Shown: positions 3,105 to 57,715 of the stretch, piece by piece
How the letters are laid out: each line of letters opens with the position of its first letter
Position numbering within the stretch: position 1 is the first letter of the stretch
Assembly: GCF_006345805.1 (NCBI RefSeq)
Contig: NC_042999.1
Coordinates: 128,216,001 to 128,280,000 of the forward strand
Direction: 5' to 3'
Source: Octopus sinensis
Lineage: Eukaryota
Length of the DNA: 64,000 nucleotides
The notes under the pieces: model-generated
What the model was told of the DNA's origin: nothing
The model's database searches: none
Seen by the model: only the letters and a program-made list of their open reading frames with translations
Position numbers and translations under genes: made by a program

Positions 3105-3116
3105 GATTATACATAC

Positions 3117-3272
3117 CAAGAGCTGAAAGTACTGCAGCTGACCAAAACACTTCTCCAAGAAGGGCTGGCAAATACAACAAACCACCCATTCGCTCACCAT
3201 ATTTAATCTGGAAAGGATCTAACATGGTAACGTAACCCTGTGTACGCATTTTTTCAGCAAAGAAAAGACCAC
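3117..3272 (-). CDS. SLC5A7: Choline transporter coding exon 3 (156 nt)
   Basis: TTTTTCAG| (G)[51 protein letters not shown](G) |GTATGT. Confidence 0.97.
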
Positions 3273-3423
3273 CTGAAAAATATGTACATAAATTTATACA
3301 AATATATGTTTAGATGATGTACTTGTGCATAATAAACACACATCTGTACACACACACACACGCGCGCGCAACAGCTTTTCTTAGTTCTAATATGAGCAGT
3401 CGCCATATTCTCTTCCATATCGG

Positions 3424-5622: not shown

Positions 5623-6007
5623 AACATACACATTATGTATGTATCTTTCATTAGTTTGGTCTAATGGAAAAGGTTGTGCCTTCATGAACCCCAACAGGCC
5701 CTTTAAGCCCAGCAAAATCAACAGGATTAATGTTCCTCTTGAATAGTTGCAACTACGCGACAATCCCAAACTTTTCCACTGTATTCATGTTAGTATGGGA
5801 AAAAATTATGCAAAACAATGAAGAAAGATCTGAAACAATGATTTTCATACTTATTCTTAATGTTTTCTGAATGATTCAAGTGTAAATATGCTAGTCACTG
5901 TTGTGTATGTCACAAGAGAACAACTTCTTCCTCATATGATGATTGTGTGATCATAGTTTAGTAATCTTAGTTGAAAGTCGAAAAATCTTAATTAAAATCT
6001 TACTTAC

Positions 6008-6115
6008 CAAATATAAGACTCAGGGCATATCCAATAGGTGCCTGGCACCAGAATAATCCATCACGAACGATAATTTCAGCTGTTCCATTGATGTAGGCAC
6101 CTCCAACCCATGTTG
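6008..6115 (-). CDS. SLC5A7: Choline transporter coding exon 2 (108 nt)
   Basis: TTTTACAG| (A)[35 protein letters not shown](G) |GTAAGT. Frame is continuous with exon 1. Not in the ORF track. Confidence 0.95.
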
Positions 6116-6747
6116 CTGTAAAACAAAATCAAACCATGCATGGAAAGATTAGCATTGGATTGTGTATGGTATGTGTATTATGAAGGAAAGTTAAAACATT
6201 GTTATTATTGTCTCAGGTGGCAAACAATCAAAAGACTAAAATAAATAGAACTCTTCACTAAATGGCTTGCAGTATTTAGTTTCTAAATTTTAACTTTATT
6301 TCTCCCAAAATTGAGAAAATAATTACCAAGAATGAAATGTAGTGAATTCAATCAGATGAATCTCTCATGGATTTCATGGTATCAAAATGTAAGTGACAGA
6401 GAACTACACAAACACTTCTACACTGGACAATGCTAAAGCAGAATCAATGTAACACCATATGGGGCAAGGCTAGCTCTTTGAATTACAGATGTGGTCCTTC
6501 TGATGAGCTTCCACACAATTTTTAATTTCACTGAAAAAGCTTGTATTGTCCATATCTGTCATCTTATGCCCTAGGACTCATACGGTCAGAGCTTAAACCC
6601 AGTTTTCTTAGTGACTGAGATTCCCTCCCCCACCCCAGTGGGTTGTTTGTCTGTCATACAGTTAACTTCTCAGCTTTTACTGGAACTTATTTATGCTGGA
6701 GCGTTCTGGAGCAATATGAAATGAAGTGTTTTTCCTCAAGAACACAA

Positions 6748-10849: not shown

Positions 10850-11000
10850 GACATGGCTGTGCAGTAAAAACTTGCTTCTCTAGCACATGCTTTCTGGGTT
10901 TAGTCCCACTGTGTGGCAACTTCTACTATAGCCTCAGGCAGACAAAAGCCTTGTGAGTAGATATGGTAGATGGAAACTGAAAGAAAAGAAGCTGATTGTT

Positions 11001-11033
<33 letters not shown>

Positions 11034-11245
11034 CTTTGTGTTTGTGTTTGTCACCCTTACTATTACTTGACAACTGATATTGGTGTGTTTACGTTCCCAT
11101 AATTTAGAAGTTCAGCAAAAGAGACCAGTAGAATAAGTACTAAGCTTACAAAGAATAAGTCTGGAGGCTGATTTCTTCAGCCCAAAACTTTTTGAAGCAG
11201 TGCTTCAGCATGGTCACAGCCACATGACTGAAACAAGTAAAAGAA
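10850..11245 (+). mobile_element. tRNA-type SINE, family B (internal (TA)n(TG)n)
   Basis: Head with box A/B-like TGGCTGTG..GG / GGGTTTAGTCCC, a microsatellite spacer and a conserved tail ...CAAATGACTGAAACAAGTAAAAG. Further copies at about 10020-10150(-), 11925-12085(-), 13440-13640(-), 19640-19800(+), 20330-20885(+), 21915-22080(-), 31755-32060(-), 32182-32580(+), 36000-36125(-), 49660-50046(-), 51290-51490(+). Confidence 0.85.
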
Positions 11246-11258
11246 TATATATATATAT

Positions 11259-11905
11259 CATCATCATTTAACGTCCGCTTTCCATGCTAGCATGGGTTGG
11301 ACGGTTCAACTGGGGTCTGGGGAGCCCGAAGGCTGCACCAGGCCAGTCAGATCTGGCAGTGTTTCTACAGCTGGATGCCCTTCCTAACGCCAACCACTCC
11401 GAGAGTGTAGTGGGTGATTTTATGTGCCACCGACACAGGTGCCAGACGAGGCTGGCAGACGGCCACGCTCGGATGGTGTTTTTATGTGCCACCGACACAG
11501 GTGCCAGATGAGGCTGGCGACGGCCACGATCAGATGGTGCTTGTTACGTGCCCACAGCATGGAGGCCAGTCGATGCGGTACTGGCTACGGCCACATTCGG
11601 ATGGTTTTCTTGTGTGTCACCGGCACTGGTACCACAAAGATACAAATTCCATTGATGTTCATCTATTTTGGTTTGTTTTGTTTTGATTTGATTTGTTTTG
11701 ATTTTCACTTGCCTCAACAGGTCTTCACAAGTGTCACAAGAAGGAAGGTATGCACAGGTGGACTGACTACGTCCCAGGTAGGGGCCACGGGTTATGGCCT
11801 GACTAGTCTTGCTGGGTCTTCGGATGGTGTTTTTATGTGCCACCGACACAGGTGCCAGATGAGGCTGGCGAACGGCCACGATCGGATGGTGTTTGTTACG
11901 TGCCC
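11259..11905 (-). mobile_element. 5'-truncated RTE LINE 3' UTR with internal ~54-bp tandem repeats
   Basis: Ends in TAAATGATGATG. Homologous to the 3' UTR that follows the RTE ORF at 40810-41420. Flanked on both sides by (TA)n. Confidence 0.75.
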
Positions 11906-13779
11906 ATATATATATATGTATATATACAACAGTCTTCTTTCAGTTTCCATCTACCAAATCCACTCACAAGGCTTTTGTTAGCCCAAAGCTATAGTAGAAG
12001 ACATTTGCCCCAGGTGCCATGCAGTGGGACTGAATCGGGAACCATGTGGTTGGGAAGCAAGCTTCTTACCACAGCTGTGTCTGCACGTATGCATATTTTT
12101 ATAATTAAATATTATAAGGAGTTGCATTAAAAAAAAAATTGTTGAGGTATTTTGTGTATTATAGAAATATAAACAATTCATTGCAGACAAATTTTAGCAA
12201 CAAAATCTAATATGGATCTCAATTGGGAACCACTGCTATAAATGATAAAGAACATGATGAAAAAATAAAAACAAAACAACCGTTTCTGGCATCAGATTAT
12301 GGCAAAGAGCACTCACTTGCAAAGTAACAGAACCACTTCAAAACATAAATAAAAGCATAAAAAATAAATAAATAAATAAAACCCTAACTAAAACAAATAA
12401 TGCCATCATTATTCACTCCATGCTATAATCTGAAAGCTGTCATGTTAGTTAGAACGAAGAGCCAATCAAATTTTAAGATATAGTTTTTAATGTATTTCTA
12501 TTGGCTGATTGAATGAAATAGCTGCAACATTTCCTCTCAGGCCAATTTACCTTTCTCAGAATAGTTAGTTAAAAGATTTTTGCTAAAAATAACTTCAACT
12601 TCTAATTTGATATTGCTATTTTTCCAATTTCTGTTTTCTTTTTTTTTGTTTATATTTTATTGGTCAGATATTCAGTGATGTTTATATTGTTTTGTCTGTG
12701 AACATCATAATCAATGAGGTTTTTTTTTTTTTAAAGAAAGAAATTTCCATGTTGATGTTAGAAAGATAAGAATTAGGTTAAGTAATGTTTCATGTAAATT
12801 ATACTCTTATTTTCAAATTTGGTTCCTAAAAGGGAATCAAATTTCTGTTTGAAATGGATTTCTATAGATTTCCATCCAATTGAAAGTGTACACAACCAGC
12901 TCTACTTATTAGACAATTTTATTGATTTCTATTTTCGTTTTTTTTTGTGTGTGTGCATCATCTCTCTTTGATTTTATCACTTAACTAAAGACGATGAATA
13001 CGGTCTTGATGATGATGATGATGATTGTAATGGTGATGCTGATGATGGTGGTGAAGCTGTTAATACTAATGATAGTGTAGGTATAAACAACCACACTGCG
13101 TTTTCTGAGACTCCAAAATATGAAATCCTTTACTTAACACTAAAAGAAGGAAAAAAAAAAGGTAATCGTTGGAAGCAGGAAAGGACATCCAGCCATAAAA
13201 TGCTGTTTCAAATAAGTCCTCGTCCAACCTATGCTGTCACAAAAACCGAACATTAACTGAATGAATTACAGTCTGAAATTATAGCCTGAGAACATGATCA
13301 GAAAATGAAGACATTATAAAGAATCTATATCTTTGTAGTCTTTCTCAGAAGTAACAGTCATTGTAAAAGGTGCAATAAGAGCAAAATATGTCCAGAGTTG
13401 TTCCTGTGTACTACTAAATGTCAAACTCACGTTGCATTGCATTCGATATCTTTTAACTTTTACTTGATTCAATCACTGGACTGTGGCCATGCCGTGGCAC
13501 TGTCTTGAAGGGTTTAGTCAAATAAATTTACCCCAGTACTTATACTTTAGGTTTGTTATGTATTCTATGCATCTCTTGTATCAAGTCATTATAATACAGG
13601 GATGTAAATAAAACAATACCAGTTGTCAAGCAATGAAAAGGGTGACAAACAACAAATACACTGACACATATATACATACATACAAACATACATGCATATA
13701 TACATGCATGCATATATACATGCATGCATACATATATACATACATATACACTCCCACACATACATACATACATACATGA

Positions 13780-16089: not shown

Positions 16090-16300
16090 CTTTTATTCTT
16101 TTACTTGTTTTGGTCATTTGACTGCAGCTATGCTGGAGCATTGCCTTAAAGGGATTTTTAGTTGGAGAAATCACACCCAAGACTTATTCTTTGTAAGCCT
16201 AATACTTATTCTATTTGTCTCTTTTGTTGAACCACTAAATTATGGGGACATAAACACACCAACATCAATTGTCAAGCGATGGCAGGGGAACAAACACACA
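16090..16300 (-). mobile_element. 3' half of a family B SINE whose 5' half lies at 19261-19410
   Basis: The two halves are co-oriented and complementary, separated by about 3 kb inserted at the SINE's internal microsatellite. Confidence 0.65.
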
Positions 16301-16336
16301 CACACACACACATGCACACGCACACACATCCACACA

Positions 16337-16384
<48 letters not shown>

Positions 16385-16480
16385 TTCTGTATGTGTAAAG
16401 TAACATTGGTTTCATATCTAGCATGAACTAAACATATCTTCAGTTTCTCTATATACATGTGTATATAATATATATATATA

Positions 16481-16717
16481 TCATCATCATCATTTAACGT
16501 CCGTTTTCCGCGCTAGCACGGGTTGGACGGTTTCGACCGGGGTCTGGGGAGCTCGGGAATGCCCCAGGCTCCAGTTAGTCTGGCAGTGTTTCTAACAGCT
16601 GGATGCCCTTCCTAACGCCAACCACTCCGCGAGTGTAGTGGGTGTTTTTTACGTGCCACATGCAAAGGTGCCAGAGGGGTCTGGCATCGGCCACGTTCGG
16701 ATGGTGCTTTTTATGTG
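16481..16717 (-). mobile_element. Young RTE 3' tail (CpGs retained)
   Basis: Same family as 11259-11905; (TGA)n tail abuts (TA)n at 16480; homology stops at 16717. Confidence 0.8.
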
Positions 16718-16955
16718 GGGAGGGGAGAATATAGGGGAGCACCAGCGGGGAGGGGTGGTTCAGAAAATGATGACAGGTTCTAGGCAAGTAGAACGTAGGA
16801 CAAGAGAGGGTAATGCATGGTCAAATAGCGTATTGAAGAGGGGGGTTCGAAGAGTAGACACCTATAATGGTGGTGGGAGAAGCGACTCCGTATAGATGGA
16901 GCAAAAATATAGAGATATCCGGTATGGTGGTGGGGGTGGGCAAGGGCGGGTGCAC

Positions 16956-17127
16956 CGGGAATATGACGGGCTGGCTTAAAAATGCTCTTAGCAAAGGAAG
17001 AGGGGGGATGGCAGACAACGTAAAAGAGGGAGAGAGAGAAGGGAAATAGTGGAACCCGCGAAAATGGGCCGCCATTGAAAAAACCCCTGTATGGAGAAAT
17101 AATATGCAATACAAGGCGAAGCTGAAA

Positions 17128-17172
<45 letters not shown>

Positions 17173-18933
17173 TAAGCAAATTTTCGACCGAGGATCAAAG
17201 GACAATACTAATACTACTAATAATAGTAATAATAATAAATAATAAAAGCTCAACCACAACATTAGATTAGAAAGACTCTCTTATCTTGGGAACATTTCGT
17301 TCTTCGGCCTGACACGGGAATATGACGGGGCGCTTAAAAATGCTCTTAGCAAAGGAAGAGGGGGGATGGCAGACAACGTAAAAGAGGGAGAGAGAGAAGG
17401 AAATAGTGGAACCCCGCGAAAATGGGCCGCCATTGAAAAAACCCCTGTATGGAGAAATAATATGCAATACAAGGCGAAGCTGAAAATAGTAATAATAATA
17501 ATATAATAATAATAATAATAATAATAATATAATAATAATAAGCAAATTTTCGACCGAGGATCAAAGGGACAATACTAATACTACTAATATAGTAATAATA
17601 TAAATAATAAACAGCTCAACCACAACATTAGATTAGAAAGACTCTCTTATCTTGGGAACATTTCGTTCTTCGGCCTGAAACGGGATATGACGGGCTGGCT
17701 AAATGCTCTTAGCAAAGGAAGAGGGGGGATGGCAGACAACGTAAAAAGAGGGAGAGAGAAGGGAAATAGTGGAACCCCGCGAAAATGGGCCGCCATTGAA
17801 AAAACCCCTGTATGGAGAAATAATATGCAATACAAGAAGCGAAGCTGAAAATAGAATAATAATAATAATAATAATAATAATATAATAATAATAATAATAA
17901 TAAGCAAATTTTCGACCGAGGATCAAAGGGACAATACTAATACTACTAATAATAGTAATAATAATAAATAATAACAGCTCAACCACAACATTAGATTAGA
18001 AAGACTCTCTTATCTTGGGAACATTTCGTTCTTCGGCCTGACACGGAATATGACGGGCTGGCTTAAATGCTCTTAGCAAAGGAAGAGAGGGGGATGGCAG
18101 ACAACGTAAAAGAGGGAGAGAGAGAAGGGAAATAGTGGAACCCCGCGAAAATGGGCCGCCATTGAAAAAACCCCTGTATGGAGAAATAATATGCAATACA
18201 AGGCGAAGCTGAAAATAGTAATAATAATAATAATAATAATAATATAATAATAATAAAATAAGCAAATTTTCGACCGAGGATCAAGGGACAATACTAATAC
18301 TACTAATAATAGTAATAATAATAAAAATAAACAGCTCAACCACAACATTAGATTAGAAAGACTCTCTTATCTTGGGAACATTTGTTCTTCGGCCTGACAC
18401 GGGAATATGACGGGCTGGCTTAAAATGCTCTTAGCAAAGGAAGAGGGGGGATGGCAGACAACGTAAAAGAGGGAGAGAGAGAAGGGAAATAGTGGAACCC
18501 CGCGAAAATGGGCCGCCATTGAAAAAACCCCTGTATGGAGAAATAATATGCAACAAGGCGAAGCTGAAAATAGTAATAATAATAATAATAATAATAATAT
18601 AATAATAATAATAATAAGCAAATTTCGACGAGGATCAAAGGGACAATACTAATACTACTAATAATAGTAATAATAATAAATAATAAACAGCTCAACCACA
18701 ACATTAGATTAGAAAGACTCTCTTATCTTGGGAACATTTCGTTCTTCGGCCTGACACGGGAATATGACGGGCTGGCTTAAATGCTCTTAGCAAGGAAGAG
18801 GGGGGATGGCAGACAACGTAAAAGAGGGAGAGAGAGAAGGGAATAGTGGAACCCCGCGAAAATGGGCCGCCATTGAAAAAACCCCTGTATGGAGAAATAA
18901 TATGCAATACAAGGCGAAGCTGAAAATAGTAAG

Positions 18934-18981
<48 letters not shown>

Positions 18982-19249
18982 GCAAATTTTCGACCGAGGA
19001 TCAAAGGGACAATACTAATACTACTAATAATAGTAATAATAATAAATAATAACAGCTCAACCACAACATTAGATTAGAAAGACCTCTTATCTTGGGAACA
19101 TTTCGTTCTTCGGCCGACACGGGAATATGACGGGCTGGCTTAAATGCTCTTAGCAAAGGAAGAGGGGGGATGGCAGACAACGTAAAAGAGGGAGAGAGAG
19201 AAGGGAAATAGTGGAACCCCGCGAAAATGGGCCGCCATTGAAAAAACCC
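16956..19249. repeat. Tandem array of a ~360-bp CpG-rich unit, 6 full copies plus a ~130-bp partial
   Basis: Unit starts at 16957, 17316, 17682, 18045, 18401, 18758 and 19121. Each full unit has an internal (AAT)n. Copies differ mostly by 1-nt indels. Confidence 0.97.
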
Positions 19250-19308
19250 ATATATATATACGACAGGCTTCTTTCAGTTTCCATCTATCAAATCCACTCA
19301 CAAGGCTT

Positions 19309-20230
19309 TGGTCAACCCAAGGCTATAGCAGAGGATGCTTGCTTAAGGTGCCACATAGTAGAATTGGACTCAGAACAATGTGGTTGATAAGTAAGCTTCT
19401 TACCACACAGCTAACGATAGATTTTTTTCTATCTCTTCAATTTCTTTTTGCCTGTGCTATCTTTTGTATTAATATTGGTTTTGTTGCTTGTGGTTCTAAT
19501 TGTTTCAATTGTTCTTATGAGTATTTAGTCTCAAGTTAATTCCTACTCAAACAGCATTATAATTAAAGATTTTCCAATCACAACTATTCTGTCTTGCTCT
19601 TAATCATTGCATACCTATGACTACATTATTCAATGTGGTCACAGGTGTGACCATGTGGTTAAGTTTCCTTTTTAGTCACATAGTTTTCGGTTCAGTTCCA
19701 CTGCATGGCACTCTAAGTGAGTGTCTTCTGTTACAGCCACAGACCACCCAAAGCCTTGTGAGCTGATTTAGTTGATGGGAACCGAAAGAATCCCAACATA
19801 CATACATGTATGTATACATATATGTGTGCATGTGTGTGTGTGTGTGTGTGTGTGCGTGTGTGTGCATGTGTGTGTGTGTGTGCATATATACATGTAATAT
19901 GTATGTACACACACACACACACATGCACACATATGCAAAGATTAAGACCAAGACAGAATAGTTGTGATTGGAAAATCTTTAATTATAATGCTGTTTGAGT
20001 AGGAATTAACTTGAGACCTATAAGAACAATTAAAACAATTAGAACCACAAGCAACAAAACCAATATTAATACAAAAGATAGCACAGGCAAAAAGAAATTG
20101 AAGAGATAAGAAAAAAATCTATCGTTAGCTGTGTGGTAAGAAGCTTGCTTCTCAACCACATTGTTCTGAGTTCAATTCTACTATGTGGCACCTTAGGCAA
20201 GCATCCTCTGCTATAGCCTCGGGTTGACCA
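19309..20230. repeat. Local inverted duplication (~300-bp arms)
   Basis: 19309-19613 is the reverse complement of 19932-20230. The arms include non-SINE sequence, and differ by a few substitutions and one ~7-bp indel. Confidence 0.9.
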
Positions 20231-30093: not shown

Positions 30094-32587
30094 CTAATTT
30101 TAAGAAAAGACTATAACATGTTCAACATACCTATATCTCCTCCCTCATCACTTTGGCTGTATCTCCTTGTCCAGGTCCCGTGCTACATACTTCTTTAATT
30201 TTCTTTTGCTTAGAACTGCTATACTCCTCCCCAACTCATATAATTCATTCTTTATCAACACTTTTCCTACAGATGCTGACTACCAGTTATTAAAACTGAA
30301 CATCAATAGACAACATTTTTTTGAGAAGGTGTGCAAATATTATGGCAATGCCCTTTCTTTTATTGTTATCACATAAAAAAAAAATCAGAGAAAGATTATT
30401 GTGAAGTGGTCATCATAGGAAATAAATTTTATGATTACTTGGATATGTGATATACTTCAAGCTTCCTTGCAGAGCCTGTGATATTTAACCTTTATTACTA
30501 TTCAGTAAATGATATTCTGTTGAAGTACAACTTTAAGTTTGCTTGCTATTCATTTGAGCAAAGTGATTTTTATGCTTTAATGGATAGACAAAAGTAAAGA
30601 ACTGGTAGAATTGTTAGTGTATCAGACAAAATGCATAGCAGCATTTCTTCCAGCTCTTTACATTCTGAGTTCAAATTCCTCTGAGGCTAACTTTGCCTTT
30701 CATCTTTTCAAGGTTGATAAAATAGATACCAGTTGAGCACTGTAGTTGATGTGATAAACTAACAACTACCACAGAAACTGCTGACCCTGGGCTAAGATTC
30801 AAAAACACTACAGATGAACATGCTAATTGGCAAAGTTCTTAAATTCCATGAAGATAAAAAAATTAATAGATTTTTATTTAATATAATTTATAATTAAGTA
30901 AATCATGGCAACATTTGTAGCTATTAAAACACAGACAAACACTGTTACAGTCACTACAGCTTTATCAGTTACTATTTTGTAATAATTCTTTCTACTACAG
31001 GTGCAAGGCCTGAAATTTGGGGCTTGAGGATAGTTGATTACATCAGCCCTAGTGCTCCACTGGTACATATTTTATTGACCCTGAAAGGATGAAAGGAAAA
31101 GTCAACCTCGGCAGAATTTGAACTCAGAACATAAAAATAGATGAAATGCTGCTAGGCATTTTGACTGGTGTACTAACAATTCTACCAGCTTGCTGTCTTA
31201 TATTATTTAGTAATAATGACATAGTGTTATATGCCAGCAATACATTAAAGTAACATGTTAGTGGTCAAGACAAAGATAAAGTTCAAAGACTTTGATAACT
31301 AGTAATTAATAATATTACAAAACAACAATTAAGTTAAAGTTAATATAACATTGCATGTGTGTTTTTAATTGCTACAATGACTCTACCATGACCTAACTGT
31401 TTAAGTTTGAACATATACTCCTAGCCAAAATCAGATTTGGGGCATTATGGATAACATAGATATATAAGAACCAGGAGATTTCAGATTTGACCTCTGGCAA
31501 GCTTGTAGAGTTTTACAGTATGTATCTTGGATTTAGAATAGCTACACTATGTCTATGTTTGTTGTGAGAGGCAGCTACAAGATTTGGTGGCAAAAAGAGC
31601 TTCTGGTCATTAAACACTACCCCAGAAAAACCATCTAACCCATACCAGTATCAAAAATCAGATATAAAATGCTGATGTTGACACAATTTCAGACTAAATC
31701 ATATGCCAAACATGTGTAACTCATGGTGTTACTTATGAACTTTATTCTTTATTCTTTTACTTCTTTCAGTCATTTGACTGTGGCCATGCAGGAACATCAC
31801 CTTTAGTCGAACAAATTGACCTAGGACTTATTCTTTGTAAGCCTAGTACTTATTGTATTGATTGTCAAGCGATGGTGGGGGGGGAGGACAAACACAGACA
31901 CACATGCACACAAATATATACATATATGTACGATAGTCTTCTTTCAGTTTCTGTCTACCAAATCCACTCACAAGGCTTTGGTCAGCCTGAGGCTGTAGTA
32001 GAAGACACTTGCCCAAAGTGTCACGCTGTGGGACTGAAACCAGGAGTATGTGGTTGGGAAGCATTTAATTGTAAATGATACGTGTATTTTGTTTTATCCT
32101 GTTTGCTGTTGTTGTGCTATCATCCTTTTCCTGCTTGCTATGTTTTGATGATTTCTATTTGTTGTGTTTTTACCTTTGATAGGTGCAGTAGTTGCTGTGT
32201 GGTAAGTAGCTTCCTTACCAGCCACATGGTTCCGAATTCAGTCTCACTGCATGGCACCTTGAGCAAGTGTCTTCTACTATAGCCTCAGGCCGACCAAAGC
32301 CTTGTGAGTGGATTTGGTAGATGGAAACTGAAAGAAGCCCGTCATGTATATATGTATGTATGTGTGTGTGTGTGTGTTTGTGTGTCTCTGTTTGTCCCCC
32401 ACCATCACTTGACAACCGACGGTGGTGTGTCTATGTCCCCGTAACTTAGTGGTTCGGCAAAAGAGACCGATAGAATAAGTACTAGGCCTACAAAGAATAA
32501 GTCATGGGTCGATTTGTTCAACTAAAAGCAGTGCTCCAGCATGGCTGCAGTCAAATGACTGGAAGAAATAAAAGAATAGAAAAAACA

Positions 32588-32889: not shown

Positions 32890-34740
32890 GGTGTTATGAG
32901 CCTGCTACAACATAGCAGGGAAGGATCAGAAGTGAGGGAGTAGGCATGTCCTATCAGAAGTGGGGGGCCAGTGGATCCCACCAGAAGTGCCACGGTGGAC
33001 ATGCAGCATCAGTGAAACACGAGGGTGAGTCGACGGTGAACAGCACATCAGAGCAGACGTGGCCCTGAGGTGGGGGGCTGCATACCATCAAGATCTGGAC
33101 TGATTCAGCCACTGTACATAGGTGGGAGGGATCAGTGAGCAGAGGATGCGAACCAAAGGGGGTGCAGAGATGCTGATAAAATGCTGTCTGGGAATTCTGG
33201 GCAAGTTAGCTGCCAAGTTTAACCTGAGGCTAACTGTGGTTTTTGTGCTCTCAGGGAAGAATAGAGCGGACGTCCTGGCCAGAGTAAAGAAAGCCTGGTT
33301 GCAGATGCCAGAGGATCTGGAGTAAGGAGTGGCTGCAGTGTGTTGACTGACTGACTTGGAGCTGAGGAGATTGCATACCATGCATCACATGGGGGTGGAC
33401 AGAACCCTGTTCCTAGCCAGGAAAGTTGACTCTGATGTGACCAGGCAGAGTGTGCAAAGAGTAGTTTGGGAGCTGCAACAGATGCCAGTCTATTGACCCT
33501 GCTCTGGGTATGCACGAGGCAGGAAGCATTCCAGTTGAACACAACTGGAAACAACTGGCTGTGGACATGACGCATTACCAGCAGGGTACATACCTCTCAA
33601 TGGTCGACTGTGAACCAGGGCAGTTAGCCATATGGAGGGAGATGAAGATGGGGACCAGAGAGGAAATCACAAGAATACTGAATGAGGTATTCCTAGAATG
33701 AGGCCCTGTGGATAAGCTGCTTGTGGACAATGGCACTGCGTTTTGCTCAGAGGTGTTGGGGGAAATGCTCGACAAGTAGTATGTCAGCCGTTTCTTCAGG
33801 GCAGCATACCAGCCAAGTGGCAAAGGAGTTGTAGAGGGGCATCATCGTACCATCAAGACCATAGGAGAGAGTGGCCACATCTCACTGGTCGAGGCCGTTT
33901 TTTGGTATAATATGTCACCCAGGATGGGACAGGCTGAGGAGTTAGTCCCACACAGGGCAATATTCAAGTATAAGTGGAGGCATTCATGTACTGCATCGCT
34001 GCATCCCACAGAAGAGAAGGAGCATGCCTTTGTGCAAGTCAGAGAAGAAGTCTGGGTTAAATCCCCAAATGCGTGGTGCACATCACAGTGGGAAAAGGGG
34101 ACAATAACTTCTGTGAATTTGAAGAACAGCGTATCCGTAAATGGCATGCCATGACATGTTTTGGATGTGTGCAGGATCATCACTGTAACAGGGGATGGGG
34201 CCAACAGTAATGGACAAGAGGAAGAAGCTGGCAGGAACATGCCAGTCCTGAAGTCCCACAGTGGTCACAGAGAGAGCAGTGCCCTCTTCACTGGTTGGCT
34301 TATTATGAGACAAGTTAAGGTGTGTGGTCAGGGTTGAGAAGAGGGCATGGGCAGGTTGGTTGAATGATCTTCAGATCAGGTGGGGCGTGTGGTGTTATGA
34401 GCCAGGCTGTATTGTAGGGAAGGATCAGAAGTAAGGGAGTAGGCATGTCCTGTCGGAAGTGGGGCCCGTGGATCCCACCAGAAGTGTCACGATGAACATG
34501 TGGCATCAGCAAAGCATGAGGGTCAGTTGGCCGTGAACAGCACATCAGAGCAGACATATGAGATGGTACAGCAACAGATAGCGCATACGGACGCAGAAAC
34601 TTGGAGATCGAGACAGCACATGGACCTTGGAGTTAGAGACAGCACATGGATGTTGAAAGTGACCCTTTTTCCAGACCAACAAGTAAGACTACCGTAATTC
34701 TCTCTTTGCATCCGTCTTTTTTCTTCCTTTACATCACACA
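32890..34740 (+). mobile_element. Ty3/Gypsy LTR retrotransposon remnant: partial LTR copy, RNase H end, integrase, LTR
   Basis: HHMGVDRTLFLARK zinc-finger region; WKQLAVDMTH, LLVDNGTAF and VVEGHHRTIK DDE motifs with stops. LTR 34321-34740 (TGTGTGGT...ATCACACA). 32890-33058 repeats 34392-34556. Confidence 0.85.
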
Positions 34741-38745: not shown

Positions 38746-38920
38746 CTGTCATAGTAAATATTCCAACAAGCATCCCTAAATTCCGCCCTGCTAACATCAC
38801 ATCATCACTGTCAGCTTGTGAACCTGTTTGTTTGGACTTGCGACCAGCCCATATTCCTACGAACAAGATTCCAAGGTAGAAAACAACAATAGCTAAAATC
38901 CCAGCAATATGTACAGCCAT
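38746..38920 (-). CDS. SLC5A7: High-affinity choline transporter, coding exon 1 (175 nt)
   Basis: Translates [58 protein letters not shown], matching the CHT1 N-terminus as I recall it. ATG at 38920; phase-1 donor G|GTAAG at 38746/38745. Confidence 0.95.
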
Positions 38921-43789: not shown

Positions 43790-46190
43790 GAGAGATCAAA
43801 TACAGAACAAACATACTTAAATTGGAGAAAGAAAAACCCTACTAATGGACCAAAACATAGACAAATTAGCTAATATTTGCAGGGATATCATAAAGAAAAG
43901 GCTATTGATAGACCTGTATATCCAACAAATTCAGTTTTATATGTTCATACAAATATAGATGTGAATAATGATATAAAGCATCCTTCCACTGAGGAAGAAG
44001 AACCTAGTGTGACAAATACCCAAAATGAGGAATTCAACAAAATTGTCCCAGACACTGACATTGTTGAGAATGGTTATAGTGAAAGTGGAAACACAGACAC
44101 TGAAGCTGACAAGCTAAAAGCAAAAATTGTATCTGAGTGGCTGAAGGCCAACACACTGAGATTAATTGTATAAATACAAAAGGAATTTATTTTGTGATTA
44201 ATTTGAAGATTTTGGTTCTGAACACAATGAACTGGGAGATTGTAATGATCTTTCCAAGATTTGCAGCTCAAAATTATTAACCAAGGTAAATGCAGTTATA
44301 AAATCCATCTTGAGTGAAGATGAAGTCAATCTCACTTCACTAAATAATTTGTTTTATTCTGCAGCTTCAATAAACACTGCACCATGTAGTATTCAAGTAA
44401 AGAGAAAAACTCAACATAAAAACAGGAAACCAGCATGGTGAGAGAGAACTAGGAATAAAATTAAGGTGCTCAGATCAGCTATTGAAATACTCAAGAAAAT
44501 CAAGAGCAAAAAAAAATAACTAGAAAGAAAATATAATGTAAAAAGAACAAACAAAACTGATGAAGCAATTGAAAAATGATCAGGCAATCAAAACAGCACA
44601 GATAAAGATAATCTTAAATGTCTATTATAAAAAAACTGCAAAAGATAATATAGTTATGAAGACCACATCTAAGAAGGGTAAGTACAAAAGTTTTGCTCAT
44701 CAATCTGGTCACATCCTAAAGAATACAACCATGATGCTCCCTGGATTAATCGACAAGTCAGAGACTCTGAACATATTACAGAACAAAAACAGAAAGATAT
44801 CTCAGTTGAAGATCTCAGGTCTGCATTGAGAAATTCTAGCAAATGGAAATCACCTGGGAAAGATGAAATCTCTAACTTCTTGCTGAATGCTTTCACTGAA
44901 TCTTACAGAGAACTGACTCACTTCTACAATAGCATTATACATGACCCTAGGAAAATCCCTCCTAGGATGGTAAATGGAGTGACTTATTCCCCCCGAAACA
45001 TCTGCCCACTTACATTACTTACAACCATGTATAAAATACTAACATCTATCATTACTGAATATACATATGCCTTCCTGATGGATGACAAAATATTCAGCAG
45101 TGAATGAAAAAGTTGTAAACATGGCTCATATGGTTGTAAAGACCTACTTTTAATCAATAAAAGGGTTCTTGAGGGCTGCCATGTATGACACAGAAAGCCT
45201 TCTTTTGCATGGATTGATTACAAAAATGCATTTGACAGCCTTTCCCATAGCTGGATTGAGAAATTCTTGGGAAGACAGCAACCATTAGAATAGACGCCTG
45301 CCTAAAGAATACCAGTAACTGGATGCATAAACTTGTATGCAAATATGAAAGTTCCAAATTAGTATTCATTATCAGAAAAAGTGAAGAAGTATGTATAGGA
45401 ATGAAAGATCAGCAAGACTAAGACTTAACTATCATAAATGAAACAGAAATCACTGTGATATCAAAACAAATAAAAGCAGGCCAAATGAAATGGATTCTCA
45501 TTGCAGCAGAATACATGGGAAAGTAAGGTGTTATGTGATAAATACCCTACAAGGACCAAAATCTTGATGTAGATGCAAATAGAAGCATCATTAGATCAGT
45601 GTTTGGCTGCATTAAATCAGAAATAAGGGGCTTCATAAAGCTGCTTAGGATCAGTGTCTGGGCCACCAGAAACTATCAAGCAAGCATTCTTCAAAATGGT
45701 GTTGATCCTGCCTACTGCTTTTATGGTGCAACCAAGGAGCAATTGACCACCTAATCTCTGGATGGTGGATGCTGTATGCTTCCTCAAATGAATATATTAA
45801 GAGCCATGATAGACTTGGCCAGTATTTATACTGGATCATATGCCATACATCTGGTTTCCTTATATGAGAACAGGTGGGATCATAAGCCTGCCAAAGTAGT
45901 AGAAAATGAAGAAACCACAGTTCTTTGGGACTTTAGTAGAGAAACTGGTCATGCTATATAGACAAATAGACTAGATATTGTAGTAAAAGATCATGTTGAC
46001 AAAATATATCAGCTCACAAACTGCAACACCTTAGTAAAATATTGAAAAGTTAAGTAAATATAAGGACCTCAGAATAGATGTCTCAAAAGAACAGCGAATG
46101 TATCTGTGATCTTTGGAGTTTTGAGGTCAATACGAAATAGTGCTCTTAAACACTATAGCCAAATACCAGCTTCAAATTAGGTAGCAGTGA
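43790..46190 (+). mobile_element. Decayed, internally deleted RLE-type LINE (R4/Dong-like)
   Basis: WKSPGKDEISNF, PLTLLTTMYKILTSII, FAWIDYKNAFDSLSHSWI (RT N-terminus); later HKPAKVVENEETTVLWDF..NRLDIVV (RLE). Many stops. Confidence 0.85.
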
Positions 46191-46270: not shown

Positions 46271-46964
46271 GAGGGAGAGAGAGAGTGAGAATGAATTGGT
46301 GGTATCTCAAAAGAGCTCAATAGTAGTGATAAGGTGTCCAAGTGGCACCTCAGGTAGGAGGAAAAACATATATACAACATATACTATAAAAAATTATGCT
46401 CATGGGTACTTCCCACATCCCAAGAAAGATATTGTCAACTTGAAAATACTGATTCTTCTAAAACTTTTTAAAAACTGAAACATTACAAATTTAACAGAAT
46501 CTTAGTTCTCAAATTCTGGCCTCCTTCCCATAAAGTATATCCATGCTAGTCAAAAATAACATCCACAGTAAAACGTCCAACTTTCAGTTAATTGAAGTCT
46601 CTGGGTGAGACTTGGAACAATTCGTATGAAACAAAACAACAATTATGTAAACAACAATAGTAATAATAGTTTCAAATTTTGGCACACTGCTAGCAATTTT
46701 AAGGGTGAAGGTAAGTCAGTTACATCAACCCCAGCATTTGACTGATAGTTATTTCATTGACCTCAAAAGGACAACAAAGTCAACCTTAGCAGCATTTGAA
46801 CTCAAAAATGTAAAGCCAGATGAAAAGTTGCTAAGATCGTGGTCCAGTGTGTTAACAAACAACAACAACAACAACAATAATAATAAAATACAGAACCAAA
46901 ATGGAGTTTCAAAATATACTGAAGAAAAAATATGGAAAGAATAATTGCTACTGGCTAATACACC

Positions 46965-47345
46965 ATAAGGCTCTGTAGGGAGGAAATAAGTCACTCTTGC
47001 TTCACATCCACCACTTACATCCACCCTATCTCCCAAATAGCAAAACCCTCTCACCGTTTCCACCTCATCACATAGCATTTCCACTGGTTCCACCAGCTCC
47101 TTTCTCACATCTTCCATAAACAAACTCTCTCACCAGTCTTGAGATCACCTTCTTCATTTTCATACATCTACCATGAATCCATTTCTCACATCTCGTACAC
47201 ACCACCATATTTGCCATTACCCTTCTCCCACATATACCACATGGGTCCACCTTACTCACTAACACTTCTCCTTCCACCCCACTCACCACCACCTTTATCT
47301 GCTTGAGGTTTACCTTCAAACCCTTGCTTTCAAACGCCTGATTGG
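46965..47345 (-). mobile_element. RTE LINE fragment (post-RT Cys-rich region)
   Basis: GLKVNLKQIKVVV..PCGICGRRVMANMVVCTRCEKWIHGRC...FCYLGDRVDVSGGCE. Confidence 0.8.
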
Positions 47346-47639
47346 AAATATATTTTCAAGATGTAGAGAGTAATTTTTGGTGACATTTCCCTGTCAACAA
47401 ATCAGCCAGTGGCTCTGTGCTTTCAGAGACAAATGGAACATAAACTCCCTAGTTTGAAATACAGTTACATGTGAGTGACAGGAAGAGCATGCAGTTGTAA
47501 AGGTAATGCCTCTATTTTCATCTAAATGATACTAGCATTGAAAATAGACAAAAAACTAAACAAACAGATGACCAAAAACCTATCAGGCAACTAATTTTAT
47601 ATTAATAATAGATACCTCTTTAACATCTGAAAAATGATA

Positions 47640-49611: not shown

Positions 49612-50221
49612 CCTTTAGCATTCAGATTACTCAAATGTCTTGGTTTCTCTATCTTTCTTTTTTATTTGTTTCAGTCATTTGAGTACAGCCATGCTGGAGC
49701 ACTGCCTTTAGTCAAACAAATCAACCCCAGTACTTATTCTTTGTAAGCCTAGTACTTTTTCTATCGGTCTCTTTTTGCTGAACCACTAAGTTACAGGGAT
49801 GTAAACACACCAGCATCGGTTGTCAAGTGATGTTGGGGGGACAAACACAGACATGCAAACATATACACACACATACACATATATATATACATATATACGA
49901 TTGCTTCTTTCAGTTTCTGTCTACCAAATCCACTCACAAGGCTTTGGTTGGCCCGAGGCGAAAGCAGAAGACATGCCATGCAGTAGGAATGAACCTGGAA
50001 CCATGTGGTTGGTAAGCAAGCTACTTACCACACAGCCACTCCTGCGCCTATTCATTCTCATTGTTTTATAGCTAGTAGCTTTGAAATTTCAATGATGTGA
50101 TTGTTTATTTTTAGAATGACATTGTAGGGTAGGTATGAGAGACTTGATCTGGCTGGTTTAAACATAAATCAGGTAGAATATTTTGGTTGGATATGACCAG
50201 TTTAAATGGTAAATGGCTGAA
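49612..50221. mobile_element. piggyBac-type MITE interrupted by a family B SINE
   Basis: TTAA-CCTTTAGCATT left end; body homologous to 61271-61486. Confidence 0.6.
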
Positions 50222-50689: not shown

Positions 50690-50736
<47 letters not shown>

Positions 50737-50737
50737 A

Positions 50738-50796
<59 letters not shown>

Positions 50797-50962
50797 GGAG
50801 TGATTGGCATTAGGAAGGTTATCCCGCTGTAGAAACCAACTCAAAACAGACTGGAGCTTGGTGCAGCACTCCAGCTTACCAGCTTCAGTCAAACCATCTT
50901 ACCCATGCTAGTATGAAAAACGGACACTAAATGATGATGATGATGCACACACACACACACAC

Positions 50963-50994
<32 letters not shown>

Positions 50995-51211
50995 AATATA
51001 TATAAATATATATATATATATTATATATATATATATATATATAATATATATATATATATTGTGGAGTGATTGGCATTAGGAAGGTTATCCCGCTGTAGAA
51101 ACCAACTCAAAACAGACTGGAGCTTGGTGCAGCACTCCAGCTTACCAGCTTCAGTCAAACCATCTTACCCATGCTAGTATGAAAAACGGACACTAAATGA
51201 TGATGATGATG

Positions 51212-51225
<14 letters not shown>
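50690..51225 (+). repeat. Tandem duplication (~266-bp period) of (CA)n(TA)n plus RTE tail
   Basis: 50792-50945 and 51058-51211 are identical by eye. Confidence 0.9.
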
Positions 51226-51242
<17 letters not shown>

Positions 51243-51559: not shown

Positions 51560-51870
51560 TAAAGCTGTGTGTTTATACAAATCAATGTGTCATTGAGGAA
51601 TGATGGTGAACTTGTCCTCACTGACACTGACAAAAGAAAAAAGGAAGAAAAAGAAGATATGGGAAATTTATTATTGGAGATTGCTGAATGAAGAGAATGT
51701 ATGAGAAAGAGTGATGGTTAACAACAAATAAACCAAAAACAGAAATCAGCTGTTGAATCTGATAGCTTAACAGTGGAGAGTATGATTAGGAATATAAAAG
51801 CAAGGAAAGCAGCTGGACCATCAGGTATGGTTGCTGAGATACTGAAAATATCTGGTGAAGAAAGATTTAT
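51560..51870 (+). mobile_element. RTE LINE fragment (pre-RT region)
   Basis: LRNDGELVLTDTDK..LLNEENV and MIRNIKARKAAGPSGMVAEILKISGE. Confidence 0.75.
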
Positions 51871-51911
51871 GACAATTACTTTAATGAAACATGTTGTAAG
51901 ATTATTTATCT

Positions 51912-51943
<32 letters not shown>

Positions 51944-53189
51944 AGATGTGTTAGAGACTATTTGGTTCTTGCCGTAAGGGTAAAAAAAAAATTACTGTTT
52001 ATTATTTTCATGCTTTGGAGAGATGTAAAACTGGAAACATCAATGTAGACATGTTGGTTTGGAAATATTTACTTTTTGATCTGAACACCTCTGAGAAGCT
52101 AGGTCTTCTACCTATTAGCTTTTGTCTATTAGCTTCAAGGAACAATTAAATACAAGTTTCGGTTTATAACATATTTAAATAACTCAGACAAATGAATGCA
52201 TTCAACTTTATCTGTTGTTCTTGTCAACTACTTGGAAAAGCCACTTCAGGCCGTTCTGAAATTGGATCGAGTATTGACATAAACATAGACGATTCTCAAA
52301 GATACTGGTGTATGCAGAGCAAATAGACACACTTGTACAAATACTTCATGTTCTTTTGGATTACTGTCTACATTTATTTTGATTTTGCTTCCTCTCTACT
52401 ATCACATTTCCCATTATTTCAACTAAGCTCAATTTTTCTCCTCTTCCTTCAACTCAGTTCAATATCTTTTTTTTCTCCTTTCCATCTCAACTCAATTTCT
52501 GTTCTCTTCCTTCCACTCAGCTCACTGTCTTTCCTCTTCCTTCAGTTCAGTTCAATTTCTCCCCTTTTCCTTCAACTCAACTTTTACTTCTCTTTCTTAC
52601 ACACAGCACCATTTCTCCTCTCCCCACATTATTTTGCTCAACTTTGTCTCCCTTCCCCTTCATCTCTAAATGTGTAAGTCCACTCTATGTATGTGTGTAC
52701 CTCTCACACCTTCCATTTCATATATAACATCCTCGTCGTCGTCGTCGTCATCATTGTCATCGTCATCATCATCATCATCATCATTTTCATAAAAATTATA
52801 CCTGTCAAGTACAGATATGGCTGCATAGTTGCAGGCATGACTGTTTGGTTAAGAAGTTCAATTTTTAACCACGTGGTTTGGATTTGTCCTTCTTCCTAAG
52901 CCATCCTGCATCTTCCACCTCAACACCTATATCCCAAATGATTTCCAATGCTATACAGTTCGCACCATATGATCCCTTTATTTGTTTCAGGCATGTACCA
53001 GCTGCCCTTCATTGGCTCCTCAGCTCACACTCTCTCCAAGACCTCTCACATAATTGCCATCGTCTTCTCTTCCACTTTATCACCCCAGTCCACTCTTGCT
53101 TGCCGTTTGAAGTCGCTACATGACATTGGGTACTATCCTGTGACAGGATAGTGACCCACCAATTTCCTGCACATGGAGAACAGCCCTCA

Positions 53190-56630: not shown

Positions 56631-56934
56631 AAAGGTTGCTAATTAAGCAATGTTATATACGCACATACACATATATATACACACATACATACATATATAC
56701 ATGTATATATATATGCATACATATACACACATCCACACACATATATATATACATACATATACATACATACATATATATGTATATATATCATATATATGCA
56801 TGTATGTATGTATTATGTATGTATATATGTATATATATTGAGTGAAAGGTCATAGCCCACCAGCCATTGGGGTCTGACAAGACGTTGTAAAGCTAAGCAC
56901 TTTATGGATGTGAAATCCTGGGTAACTCTATAAT

Positions 56935-57715
56935 CCCATCTCATCTAGGTCGTCCCATAGGATGCCCCAAGACTGTTTCCACACGTTTCCCCATTCATCT
57001 TGATCTTCCATAATGGTCCTCAGCTCCTGTACCCCTTCCATACCAGTATCTTCCAACAAGTTGTCGATATATGTCGTCTTCCTCCTTGCTCTCTTGGTTC
57101 TTCCTTCTGTTGGTTGCCAGAGCACTAGCTTGTTAGCAATTTCATTGGTGTGTCTGATGCAGTGTCCACCTAGCCTCATCCTTCTATGCTGTATCTTCAA
57201 TGTTACTTTTGGTAGTCCCTGGTATAAGTCGGCGTTTGTTGTATGACTCTTCCAGGAGACATTGAGTGCCATTCTAAGCATCCTTGTATAACAACCGTCC
57301 AACTGTTTCTTCAATGCTTTAGTGAGCATCCGTATTTCAGCCCCATATAGAAGAACAGACTCCACTGTTGCCAGAAACAACCTCACTTTCAATTACCTTG
57401 TTAACTTTGAACTCCATATCTTTCTTAATTTTTGGCATGCACTCCAGGCAAGAGCTTTCCTTGCTACGATGTCTTTTTCAGTAATTTGTGTCCATGCACC
57501 AAGCTATTTGAAATTTTCAACTACCTTGAGCGACTTACCATCTCTCACTTTTGCTGACACAGGTATTTCATGGTTGAATACTTGTAGCTCTGTTTTGTTT
57601 GCAATACAGTACACTCCTCCTTTCCCCGATTCCTGCTCTAGTCTACTCAGCATCTCCTGTGCCTGATCTGTCCTTTCTTTTAGTAATGCCAGGTCATCAG
57701 CATAAACTGACCATA
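56935..57715 (-). mobile_element. 5'-truncated RTE-clade LINE (RT C-terminus to 3' end)
   Basis: YADDLALL motif; frame runs to RLFLATVESVLLYGAE...RRMRLGGHCIRH with only about 2 stops; GATGAGATG tail. Confidence 0.9.

Follow-up and report, generated by a model that had tools for sequence, protein, structure and literature searches.

A block of ~2.8 kb at positions 16481-19249 of the octopus DNA analyzed here (a 64-kb window, meaning the whole stretch studied) sits precisely at the (TA)n run inside a single old SINE of tRNA type. Read on the minus strand, it runs from a 360-bp tandem array (6.4 copies) through a 238-bp unique leader to a 237-bp tail with (TGA)4. Because the SINE halves are colinear, the CpGs are kept and the junctions are clean, a single target-primed insertion is the best reading, and this architecture makes it probable that the block arrived by one event. 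To the whole scenario set out below, a single insertion of a composite RNA that came from an existing element, we assign a probability of roughly 0.5.

Anatomy of the insert

The order of array, leader and tail on the minus strand, proposed in a first-pass annotation, was borne out by Tandem Repeats Finder, unit alignment and within-window matches. Tandem Repeats Finder placed the array at 16956-19249 on the minus strand (period 363, 6.4 copies, 95% matches). Alignment of the units resolved six full monomers of ~360 bp (357-365 bp) and a 125-bp partial monomer at 19125-19249, which is the 5' end of the element, with the monomer count and fine details made uncertain by the consensus noise of the assembly (1-bp deletions). 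The monomers are more than 99.5% identical and contain 3-4 true substitutions in all, the remaining differences being scattered 1-bp indels and changes in the length of (AAT)n. They are AT-rich, and an (ATT)n run is present in every one. The motif AATGGCGGC, which we take to resemble a YY1 core, occurs at +11 to +19 from the 5' end of the insert (19239-19231), a position that presumably recalls the YY1 site near the start of human L1. Scans of the leader and monomer against Rfam, tRNA models and Pfam gave no match, and the empty Rfam and tRNA scans rule out an array of 5S, snRNA or tRNA genes. The term satellite, used for the array in the first-pass annotation, is a putative label.

The leader (16718-16955, minus strand) has a GC content of 52%, and 70% of the element strand is C+T. 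It has no other match in the window (word size 7, E<=1), no coding or RNA-family match (Pfam, Rfam, tRNA) and no relationship to the tail family. Its derivation from a decayed monomer or from the decayed 62-bp repeat of that family was rejected on local alignment scores no better than those of shuffled sequence. Tail, leader and monomer share no mutual similarity, and neither the tail/leader junction (16717/16718) nor the leader/array junction carries a TA run, direct repeat or other duplication; the 5' end of the tail directly abuts the leader (GTGG/GGAGGGG). A search of the 64-kb window found leader, monomer and the two junctions nowhere outside the block.

Over its 2.77 kb, the element strand contains 19 T5 matches and no AATAAA or ATTAAA, so that a read-through RNA of RNA polymerase II is feasible, whereas transcription by RNA polymerase III from the SINE head is not. 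A composite transcribed by RNA polymerase III from the adjacent SINE head was rejected on the same 19 T5 matches, on a T6 run that lies only 4-9 nt into the block, and on the location of the matching SINE body beyond the block.

The 3' tail and its family

The LINE-type 3' tail (16481-16717, minus strand, 237 nt) is 86% identical to 11257-11488 and ends in (TGA)4 at 16481-16492, which reads as (TCA)4 on the plus strand. At least nine other copies of this family are dispersed in the window, all variably truncated at the 5' end and all finishing in (TGA)n (copy lengths include 22, 49, 79, 145, 147, 178, 195 and 653 bp). Ten copies lie within the 64 kb, cut short at differing 5' points but always closing with (TGA)n, and in this the family acts like one that is mobilised by a LINE. 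In the block, similarity of the tail to the family breaks off at 16717, partway through the family's second 62-bp repeat unit; the sequence that follows on the same strand is unrelated. In a second young copy, at 11257-11909, 62-bp tandem repeats lie immediately upstream of the tail, and this copy, too, adjoins a TA run next to the head of a SINE. Three of nine independent family insertions adjoin TA runs, which make up 0.76% of the window (post hoc P ~7e-5).

A short hairpin (CCGUGC-UA-GCGCGG), a candidate site of recognition by the reverse transcriptase, lies ~30 nt from the end of the tail, and this 5-bp hairpin is kept in seven copies. The copy in the block shows a double change from A-U to G-C, and both changes are CpG-type transitions; as transitions of the kind produced by CpG decay, they were discounted as evidence of compensatory change. 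Folding of the whole tail was no better than that of shuffled sequence (z = -0.36). The window contains no ORF longer than 188 aa, no reverse transcriptase adjoining any tail copy and no LINE with this tail. The RTE assignment that the first-pass annotation gave to the tail is putative. The available description of Octopus RTE-2_OV gives the 3' UTR of that element as mostly microsatellite.

Insertion site and interrupted SINE

Direct reading confirmed the 11-bp flanks given in the first-pass annotation: ATATATATATA runs at 16470-16480, on the 3' side of the insert, and at 19250-19260, on its 5' side, are identical and form the two copies of a candidate target-site duplication (TSD). Precisely where the block is inserted, intact SINE copies have a (TA)n(TG)n run of their own. 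The TSD is thus ambiguous, as the annotation had also held, because the TA flank is native to the SINE's own (TA)n; it is plausible given the enrichment of the tail family at TA runs.

The tRNA-type head half of the SINE (19261-19410, minus strand) is 75-95% identical to other window copies, is colinear with intact copies and finishes in ...GAAACTGAAAGAAGCCTGTCG immediately ahead of the TA run. The other half, with an internal (TG)n, spans 16090-16383 on the minus strand; its body (16090-16300) ends in (AAAGAATA)n, and the dinucleotide run reads as (AC)n on the plus strand at 16290-16383. Between the (TG)n and (TA)n runs is an 86-bp segment (16384-16469) that belongs to the pre-insertion site, outside the insert. 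It is missing from three intact SINE copies, contains no CpG and has no significant match elsewhere in the window. Excision of 16481-19260 leaves a SINE colinear with these three copies. The view that the two halves of one SINE lie outside the block therefore holds as to colinearity but needs amending on the body side, where the (AC)n run and the 86-bp segment also intervene. A search for an empty site in the orthologous intron yielded best orthologue matches of just 72-74% identity, with no close relative among them.

Exons identified around the block place it in intron 1 of a choline-transporter gene, and insert, SINE and gene share one orientation (sense). The neighborhood is unstable: positions 19309-20230 form a palindrome, and 266 bp are duplicated at 50692-51237.

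CpG retention and age

Observed/expected CpG ratios reach 0.88 in the tail, 0.71 in the leader and 0.99 in the array, whereas each SINE half has 0.14, the 2-kb flanks have 0.20 and the window as a whole has 0.26. This agrees with the earlier observation that all three parts keep their CpGs while neighboring repeats have lost theirs, and the block is the largest CpG-retaining stretch of the window. Ratios of 0.71-0.99 in all parts indicate that the insert is young, and their height indicates that leader and monomer do not come from ordinary decayed DNA.

Searches beyond the window

An exact lookup of a 160-aa ORF that crosses the array/leader junction found nothing, and homology searches with this ORF and with a 70-aa ORF at the leader/tail junction were without hits, in collections that returned nothing from this organism or its close relatives. 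A monomer 20-mer matched four metagenome contigs that share just 20-31 bases with it, as expected by chance, and no viral contig. A 22-mer from the tail end matched one viral contig, with the match confined to those 22 bases. Four sequence strings from tail and monomer, sought in published papers, gave nothing; in the supplements of an octopus LINE paper the only match was one of 23 nt to the tail end, in one transcript.

Proposed origin and alternatives

We propose that a single composite RNA was copied by one recent event of target-primed reverse transcription into the (TA)n run of the SINE. The 3' end of this RNA would have been the tail of the (TGA)n-terminated LINE family, which the reverse transcriptase of that family presumably recognises and at which it would prime. 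Reverse transcription would then have continued through the 238-nt leader into the run of 360-nt monomers and stopped 125 nt into the seventh, either at the 5' end of the RNA or by 5' truncation. That the block went in as one piece, as the first-pass annotation had it, is well supported by the colinear halves, the clean junctions, the kept CpGs and an upstream part that has no 3' terminus of its own. The source of the RNA was most likely an existing element, a LINE or a non-autonomous derivative with tandem monomers upstream of its tail, to which the VNTR of SVA and the promoter monomers of mouse L1 come closest; on indirect arguments, we infer that such elements move by way of the tail and form a family. 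We lean toward such a non-autonomous or LINE-derived element because leader and monomer are rich in CpG and because the copy at 11257-11909 also carries repeats upstream.

A one-off chimeric retrocopy that represents no family is a possible, somewhat doubtful, alternative, and two routes could lead to it. By template switching, a reverse transcriptase on LINE or LINE-tail RNA would leave its template 237 nt from the 3' end for the 3' end of an unrelated transcript, one that read through a tandem array of 360-bp units and on into 238 nt of its flank. By read-through, a transcript of the array would extend into a downstream 5'-truncated copy of the tail and then be mobilised, in the manner of a 5' transduction. 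In architecture the block does match known LINE template-switch chimeras, a single pair of flanking repeats enclosing a 5'-truncated LINE 3' part and, on the same strand, what would be the copy of a second RNA, and the break falls at an arbitrary point within the 62-bp repeat of the family. Leader and monomer also have no other copy in the window, an absence that over 64 kb carries next to no statistical power. The upstream module corresponds to no known abundant small RNA (Rfam at gathering score or E<=1 and tRNA searches were empty), and a leader and monomer with CpG ratios of 0.71 and 0.99 would be surprising in an arbitrary array and the DNA beside it, except at an unmethylated locus. The second family copy with repeats upstream of its tail argues further against an accident, in that such repeats appear to be a habit of the family. 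An existing element is, we think, the most likely source. The data do not separate the two origins offered in the first-pass annotation, a template-switch chimera and a non-autonomous element with a LINE tail.

Independent or in-place events, with array and leader present first and the 237-bp tail landing later, or with a short insert amplifying one of its segments in place, are improbable. Two hits are conceivable at a TA run that is a preferred landing site, but a separate insertion of the tail should have TA on both sides, and the tail instead abuts the leader at its 5' end. Leader and array have no recognisable terminus, terminal inverted repeat, TSD, poly(A) or microsatellite 3' end of their own with which to have arrived separately, and CpG retention is equally high across the three parts. 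Near-identical monomers fit recent local amplification, as does the instability of the neighborhood noted above, but growth in place accounts for copy number only and leaves the composite unexplained. Against the favored scenario, monomers this alike would also allow the array to have expanded on site once a shorter element had inserted.

The near absence of substitutions among monomers and the end of the insert in mid-monomer would also fit a rolling-circle origin, raised in the first-pass annotation as a switch to a circular transcript, in which the reverse transcriptase switched to a circular RNA of ~360 nt and made the array during insertion by 6.4 rounds of copying. This is highly unlikely: the leader between tail and array would call for two successive template switches, the Rfam scan found no matching RNA family and no circular RNA is known, and recent amplification or homogenisation explains the identity of the monomers equally well. 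Least credible is an artefact of the long-read assembly, a false join or an inflated repeat, for while most differences between monomers are scattered deletions of 1 bp, typical of consensus noise, a false join would not land between exactly complementary SINE halves with matching TA runs.

DNA transposon origins were rejected on structure. Helitrons and Helentrons begin with 5' TC, end in 3' CTRR with a subterminal hairpin and insert at AT without a TSD. The plus strand of the block starts with TC but ends in ...AAAAAACCC, (TGA)4 closes the minus strand, and the tail family is 5'-truncated in the manner of LINEs. A DNA transposon with terminal inverted repeats was likewise rejected.

Comparison with known composite elements

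With the single insertion of a composite RNA that we favor, the block adds one more case to a known type of event or element. SVA and LAVA are composite retrotransposons of hominoids with a VNTR. Shared with these are non-coding, unrelated modules, an internal array of variable number (6.4 copies in the block), presumed action of a LINE in trans, target-primed insertion and frequent 5' truncation, the modular make-up and internal array being directly visible in the block. SVA differs in its poly(A) end and reliance on L1, in contrast to the LINE-derived (TGA)n tail described here, and in VNTR units of 35-50 bp, compared to 360 bp. SVA is moreover a proven multi-copy family, whereas one copy of the block was seen, within 64 kb. 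An undescribed SVA-like family of cephalopods, in which a LINE-type (TGA)n tail would move arrays of CpG-rich 360-bp monomers, possibly promoters, and seed satellite-like arrays, is a speculative extension that we consider unlikely.

Possession of a 3' tail in common with a 'stringent' LINE partner is described for SINEs and other short retroposons (Malik & Eickbush, 1998; Ohshima & Okada, 2005; as cited in PMC9115989), and such sharing extends to retroposons related to RTE (Nishiyama & Ohshima, 2018, PMC6007223). In common with these, the block has a copy of a LINE-family 3' tail and a terminal microsatellite, and 5'-truncated copies occur. TSDs of RTE-related retroposons are reported to begin with T, as does the candidate TSD of the block; the T-stretch ~10 nt upstream of the TSD (PMC6007223) is absent. 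Unlike tail-sharing SINEs, the block lacks a head for RNA polymerase III, measures 2.8 kb and consists mostly of tandem array.

The 5' end invites comparison with the mouse L1 5' UTR, which is built of tandem promoter monomers (A, Tf, Gf). Mollusc LP-SINEs have a promoter head derived from a LINE (PMC4758252). Resembling these, the block carries CpG-rich monomers in tandem at the 5' end of what would be a non-LTR retroposon, and its copy breaks off inside a monomer. In mouse L1 the monomers are followed by the LINE ORFs, whereas no ORF or Pfam domain lies between array and tail in the block, which would fit this type only as an internally deleted derivative. The mouse monomers are promoters; those of the block are 360 bp long and AT-rich, with a putative promoter role.

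U6-L1 chimeras are reportedly produced by template switching and likewise fuse a 5'-truncated LINE 3' part head-to-tail to a copy of another RNA in one insertion. Their partner is a known small RNA, in contrast to the unique segment and tandem array found here. As for satellite-like arrays carried within mobile elements, Helentron-borne arrays occur in bivalves, and the block would add a further case in a mollusc. Tandem repeats in the UTRs of plant LTR retrotransposons seed satellites (PMC7004042). Such carriers are LTR elements or rolling-circle DNA transposons, whereas the block has a LINE-type tail and ends unlike those of a Helitron.

Significance

Were the block a one-off, it would record an instance of template switching, or of capture by read-through, involving the reverse transcriptase of a microsatellite-tailed LINE, and its interest would be modest. 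If its junctions recur across the genome, it would be an invertebrate counterpart of SVA. A carrier with a LINE tail would then spread ready-made tandem arrays, a direct route from transposable element to satellite, and the monomer would be a candidate promoter of a young and active retroposon lineage. LINE activity in the brain is under discussion for this genome (PMC9115989). The gene hit here, in intron 1, is that of a neuronal choline transporter, and the insertion is very young and may be polymorphic.

Structure of the composite insert

The block at 16481-19249 (minus strand) is best explained as one composite RNA inserted in a single event, which we consider about 80% probable. Its division into an array, a unique segment and a (TGA)n tail, proposed in the first-pass annotation, is borne out by TRF, alignments and self-comparison of the window. 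TRF delimits the array at 16956-19249 (period 363, 6.4 copies), and unit alignment resolves it, read on the minus strand from 19249 to 16956, into a 125-bp partial monomer and six full monomers of 357-365 bp. It is followed on the same strand by a 238-bp leader (16955-16718), with no other match in the window, and a 237-nt tail (16717-16481), assigned by family homology and ending in (TGA)4. Only three or four true substitutions distinguish the monomers; otherwise they vary by 1-bp deletions, scattered and also outside homopolymers, and by (AAT)n length. The deletions suggest the noise of an unpolished long-read consensus, and small indels in the window are therefore not to be trusted.

A AATGGCGGC motif lies on the element strand at +11 to +19 from the 5' end of the insert; presumably it resembles the YY1 site near the human L1 start and mouse L1 promoter monomers, which we treat as a lead only. 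Open reading frames across the two junctions within the block (array/leader and leader/tail) had no match in lookups or homology searches, and when metagenome and viral contigs were scanned for short patterns from the block, only chance matches of 20-31 bases turned up.

Insertion site and host gene

The interrupted element is a tRNA-type SINE on the minus strand, with its head at 19410-19261, an internal (TA)n(TG)n run, and a body at 16300-16090 that ends in (AAAGAATA)n. With the block removed, the joined flanks were aligned to three intact copies (10850-11247, 32195-32581 and 49660-50035) and proved colinear with all three along their whole length, placing the block exactly within the SINE (TA)n run after ...GAAACTGAAAGAAGCCTGTCG. 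The 11-bp ATATATATATA is present on either side of the block. It had earlier been called an ambiguous target site duplication (TSD), and we agree: since the intact copies have a (TA)n run there, the flanks are native SINE sequence. An extra 86 bp between the (TG)n and (TA)n runs (16384-16469) is absent from the three intact copies and has no other match in the window. A palindrome with arms of ~305 bp (19309-19613 and 19932-20230), which are 93-98% complementary and separated by a 318-bp spacer, begins 48 bp from the block and covers part of the SINE head and unique flank.

The window is AT-rich (36% GC; CpG o/e 0.26), with one tRNA-type SINE and microsatellites abundant throughout; we take the SINE and the tail to be similar to octopus repeats. 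The block lies in sense orientation in intron 1 (~32.6 kb) of a high-affinity choline transporter gene (SLC5A7-like, PF00474), whose first four coding exons are on the minus strand at approximately 38747-38920, 6003-6116, 3115-3273 and 623-772; the top matches in an orthologue search with the protein are 72-74% identical. Between exon-like pieces of this gene, the interval 1001-2000 (1627-1739) is purine-rich, with a GC skew of +0.59 and a 54-bp tandem repeat in 2.1 copies. Remnants of coding sequence from other mobile elements, all decayed, lie at 33200-34650, 56931-57392 (-), 46752-47355 (-), 44682-45104 (+) and 51722-52045 (+). Some are integrase-like, stop-free and within a GC-rich stretch (51% GC), some look like the C-terminal region of a LINE reverse transcriptase, and a further piece has a PHD finger.

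The tail family

The tail matches at least nine other sites in the window, the closest being 11257-11488 at 86% identity. Copies of 22, 49, 79, 145, 147, 178, 195 and 653 bp share the (TGA)n end and differ in their 5' cut points, the footprint of target-primed reverse transcription of the LINE type, so that the tail is a genuine retroposon tail. Seven copies keep a 5-bp hairpin located about 30 nt before the tail end. The one double change in it was given little weight, since each of the two is a CpG-type transition; the whole tail folds no better than shuffled sequence. The window contains no open reading frame above 188 aa, no reverse transcriptase beside any tail copy, and no mobile-element remnant adjoining a (TGA)n tail copy so as to identify a partner LINE. 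The octopus RTE-2_OV has been described as having a 3' UTR that is mostly microsatellite, and among the supplementary data of PMC9115989 one octopus transcript has the final 23 nt of the tail family at its start.

The longest copy, e2 (11257-11909, minus strand, 653 bp), is also young (CpG o/e 0.67) and carries 62-bp tandem repeats upstream of its tail (11413-11605 and 11810-11905). Homology of the block to e2 ends at 16717, within the second copy of this repeat. Like the block, e2 has a minus-strand SINE head (11929-12075) as its 5' neighbour; it is flanked by TA runs, and its 3' neighbour is not the matching SINE body but another SINE, on the plus strand, which adjoins it with its 3' end. 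TA runs of at least 10 bp make up 0.76% of the window and adjoin three of nine independent tail-family insertions, with a post hoc probability of ~7e-5 that is only rough because runs may have lengthened after the insertions. Such a preference, if real, would explain why the block and e2 both lie beside a SINE head. A 266-bp unit is tandemly duplicated at 50692-51237 (2.1 copies with 96% matches), and each unit contains a 147-bp 5'-truncated tail copy between long TA and CA microsatellites.

One insertion or several

All three parts of the block retain CpGs (o/e 0.88 in the tail, 0.71 in the leader, 0.99 in the array) compared with SINE halves at 0.14 each and 2-kb flanks at 0.20, confirming a contrast noted at first pass; no other CpG-retaining stretch in the window is as large as the block. 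The tail directly adjoins the leader, and neither a TA run nor any other repeat lies between them. This argues against a separate tail insertion into the TA run, which would be expected to leave one. Array and leader lack a 3' terminus, a TSD and inverted repeats of their own, and we regard independent or in-place events as unlikely. The colinear flanks, bare junctions and CpG content uphold the proposed one-block insertion inside a SINE, and the first-pass interpretation as a whole is supported in part.

Neither AATAAA nor ATTAAA occurs on the element strand over 2.77 kb, so that one RNA polymerase II transcript across the block is possible, in line with a single event, a possibility being all that this shows because the absence follows from the base composition of the strand. 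An RNA polymerase III transcript begun in the SINE head is ruled out by 19 T5 matches on the element strand, among them a T6 run that occupies nt 4-9 from the 5' end.

Origin of the composite

At roughly even odds, the source was an element that already existed, whether a LINE or a non-autonomous derivative carrying a monomer region. Leader and monomer lie far above ordinary DNA of the genome in CpG, which fits a master, maintained or unmethylated, from which they were recently copied. In e2, the sole other young tail-family copy, tandem repeats likewise lie immediately upstream of the tail, and repeat-bearing upstream regions therefore seem typical of the lineage. A one-off chimera, made by template switching or by read-through from an array into a downstream tail fragment, is a more doubtful source; in its favor, the break falls at an arbitrary point within the 62-bp repeat, and the window holds no second copy of leader or monomer, 64 kb giving almost no detection power. 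Rolling-circle reverse transcription of a circular RNA would account for the identical monomers but requires two template switches, because the leader separates tail from array, and is very improbable. An assembly artefact is slightly less probable still.

Helitrons, DNA transposons and RNA polymerase III SINEs were rejected as classes for the block because their defining features, when tested for, were not found. Classical U6-L1 chimeras have a known small RNA as partner, whereas the upstream module of array and leader matches none. In mode of action there is a likeness to LINE-tail-dependent short retroposons (PMC6007223, PMC4758252), in architecture one to SVA-type VNTR composites or to an internally deleted LINE that has 5' monomers. 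That tandem repeats can travel in transposable elements and seed satellites is well established (PMC7004042). We conclude that the block adds a new example to a kind of element already known, and that it would gain interest only if the same junctions recur across the genome.
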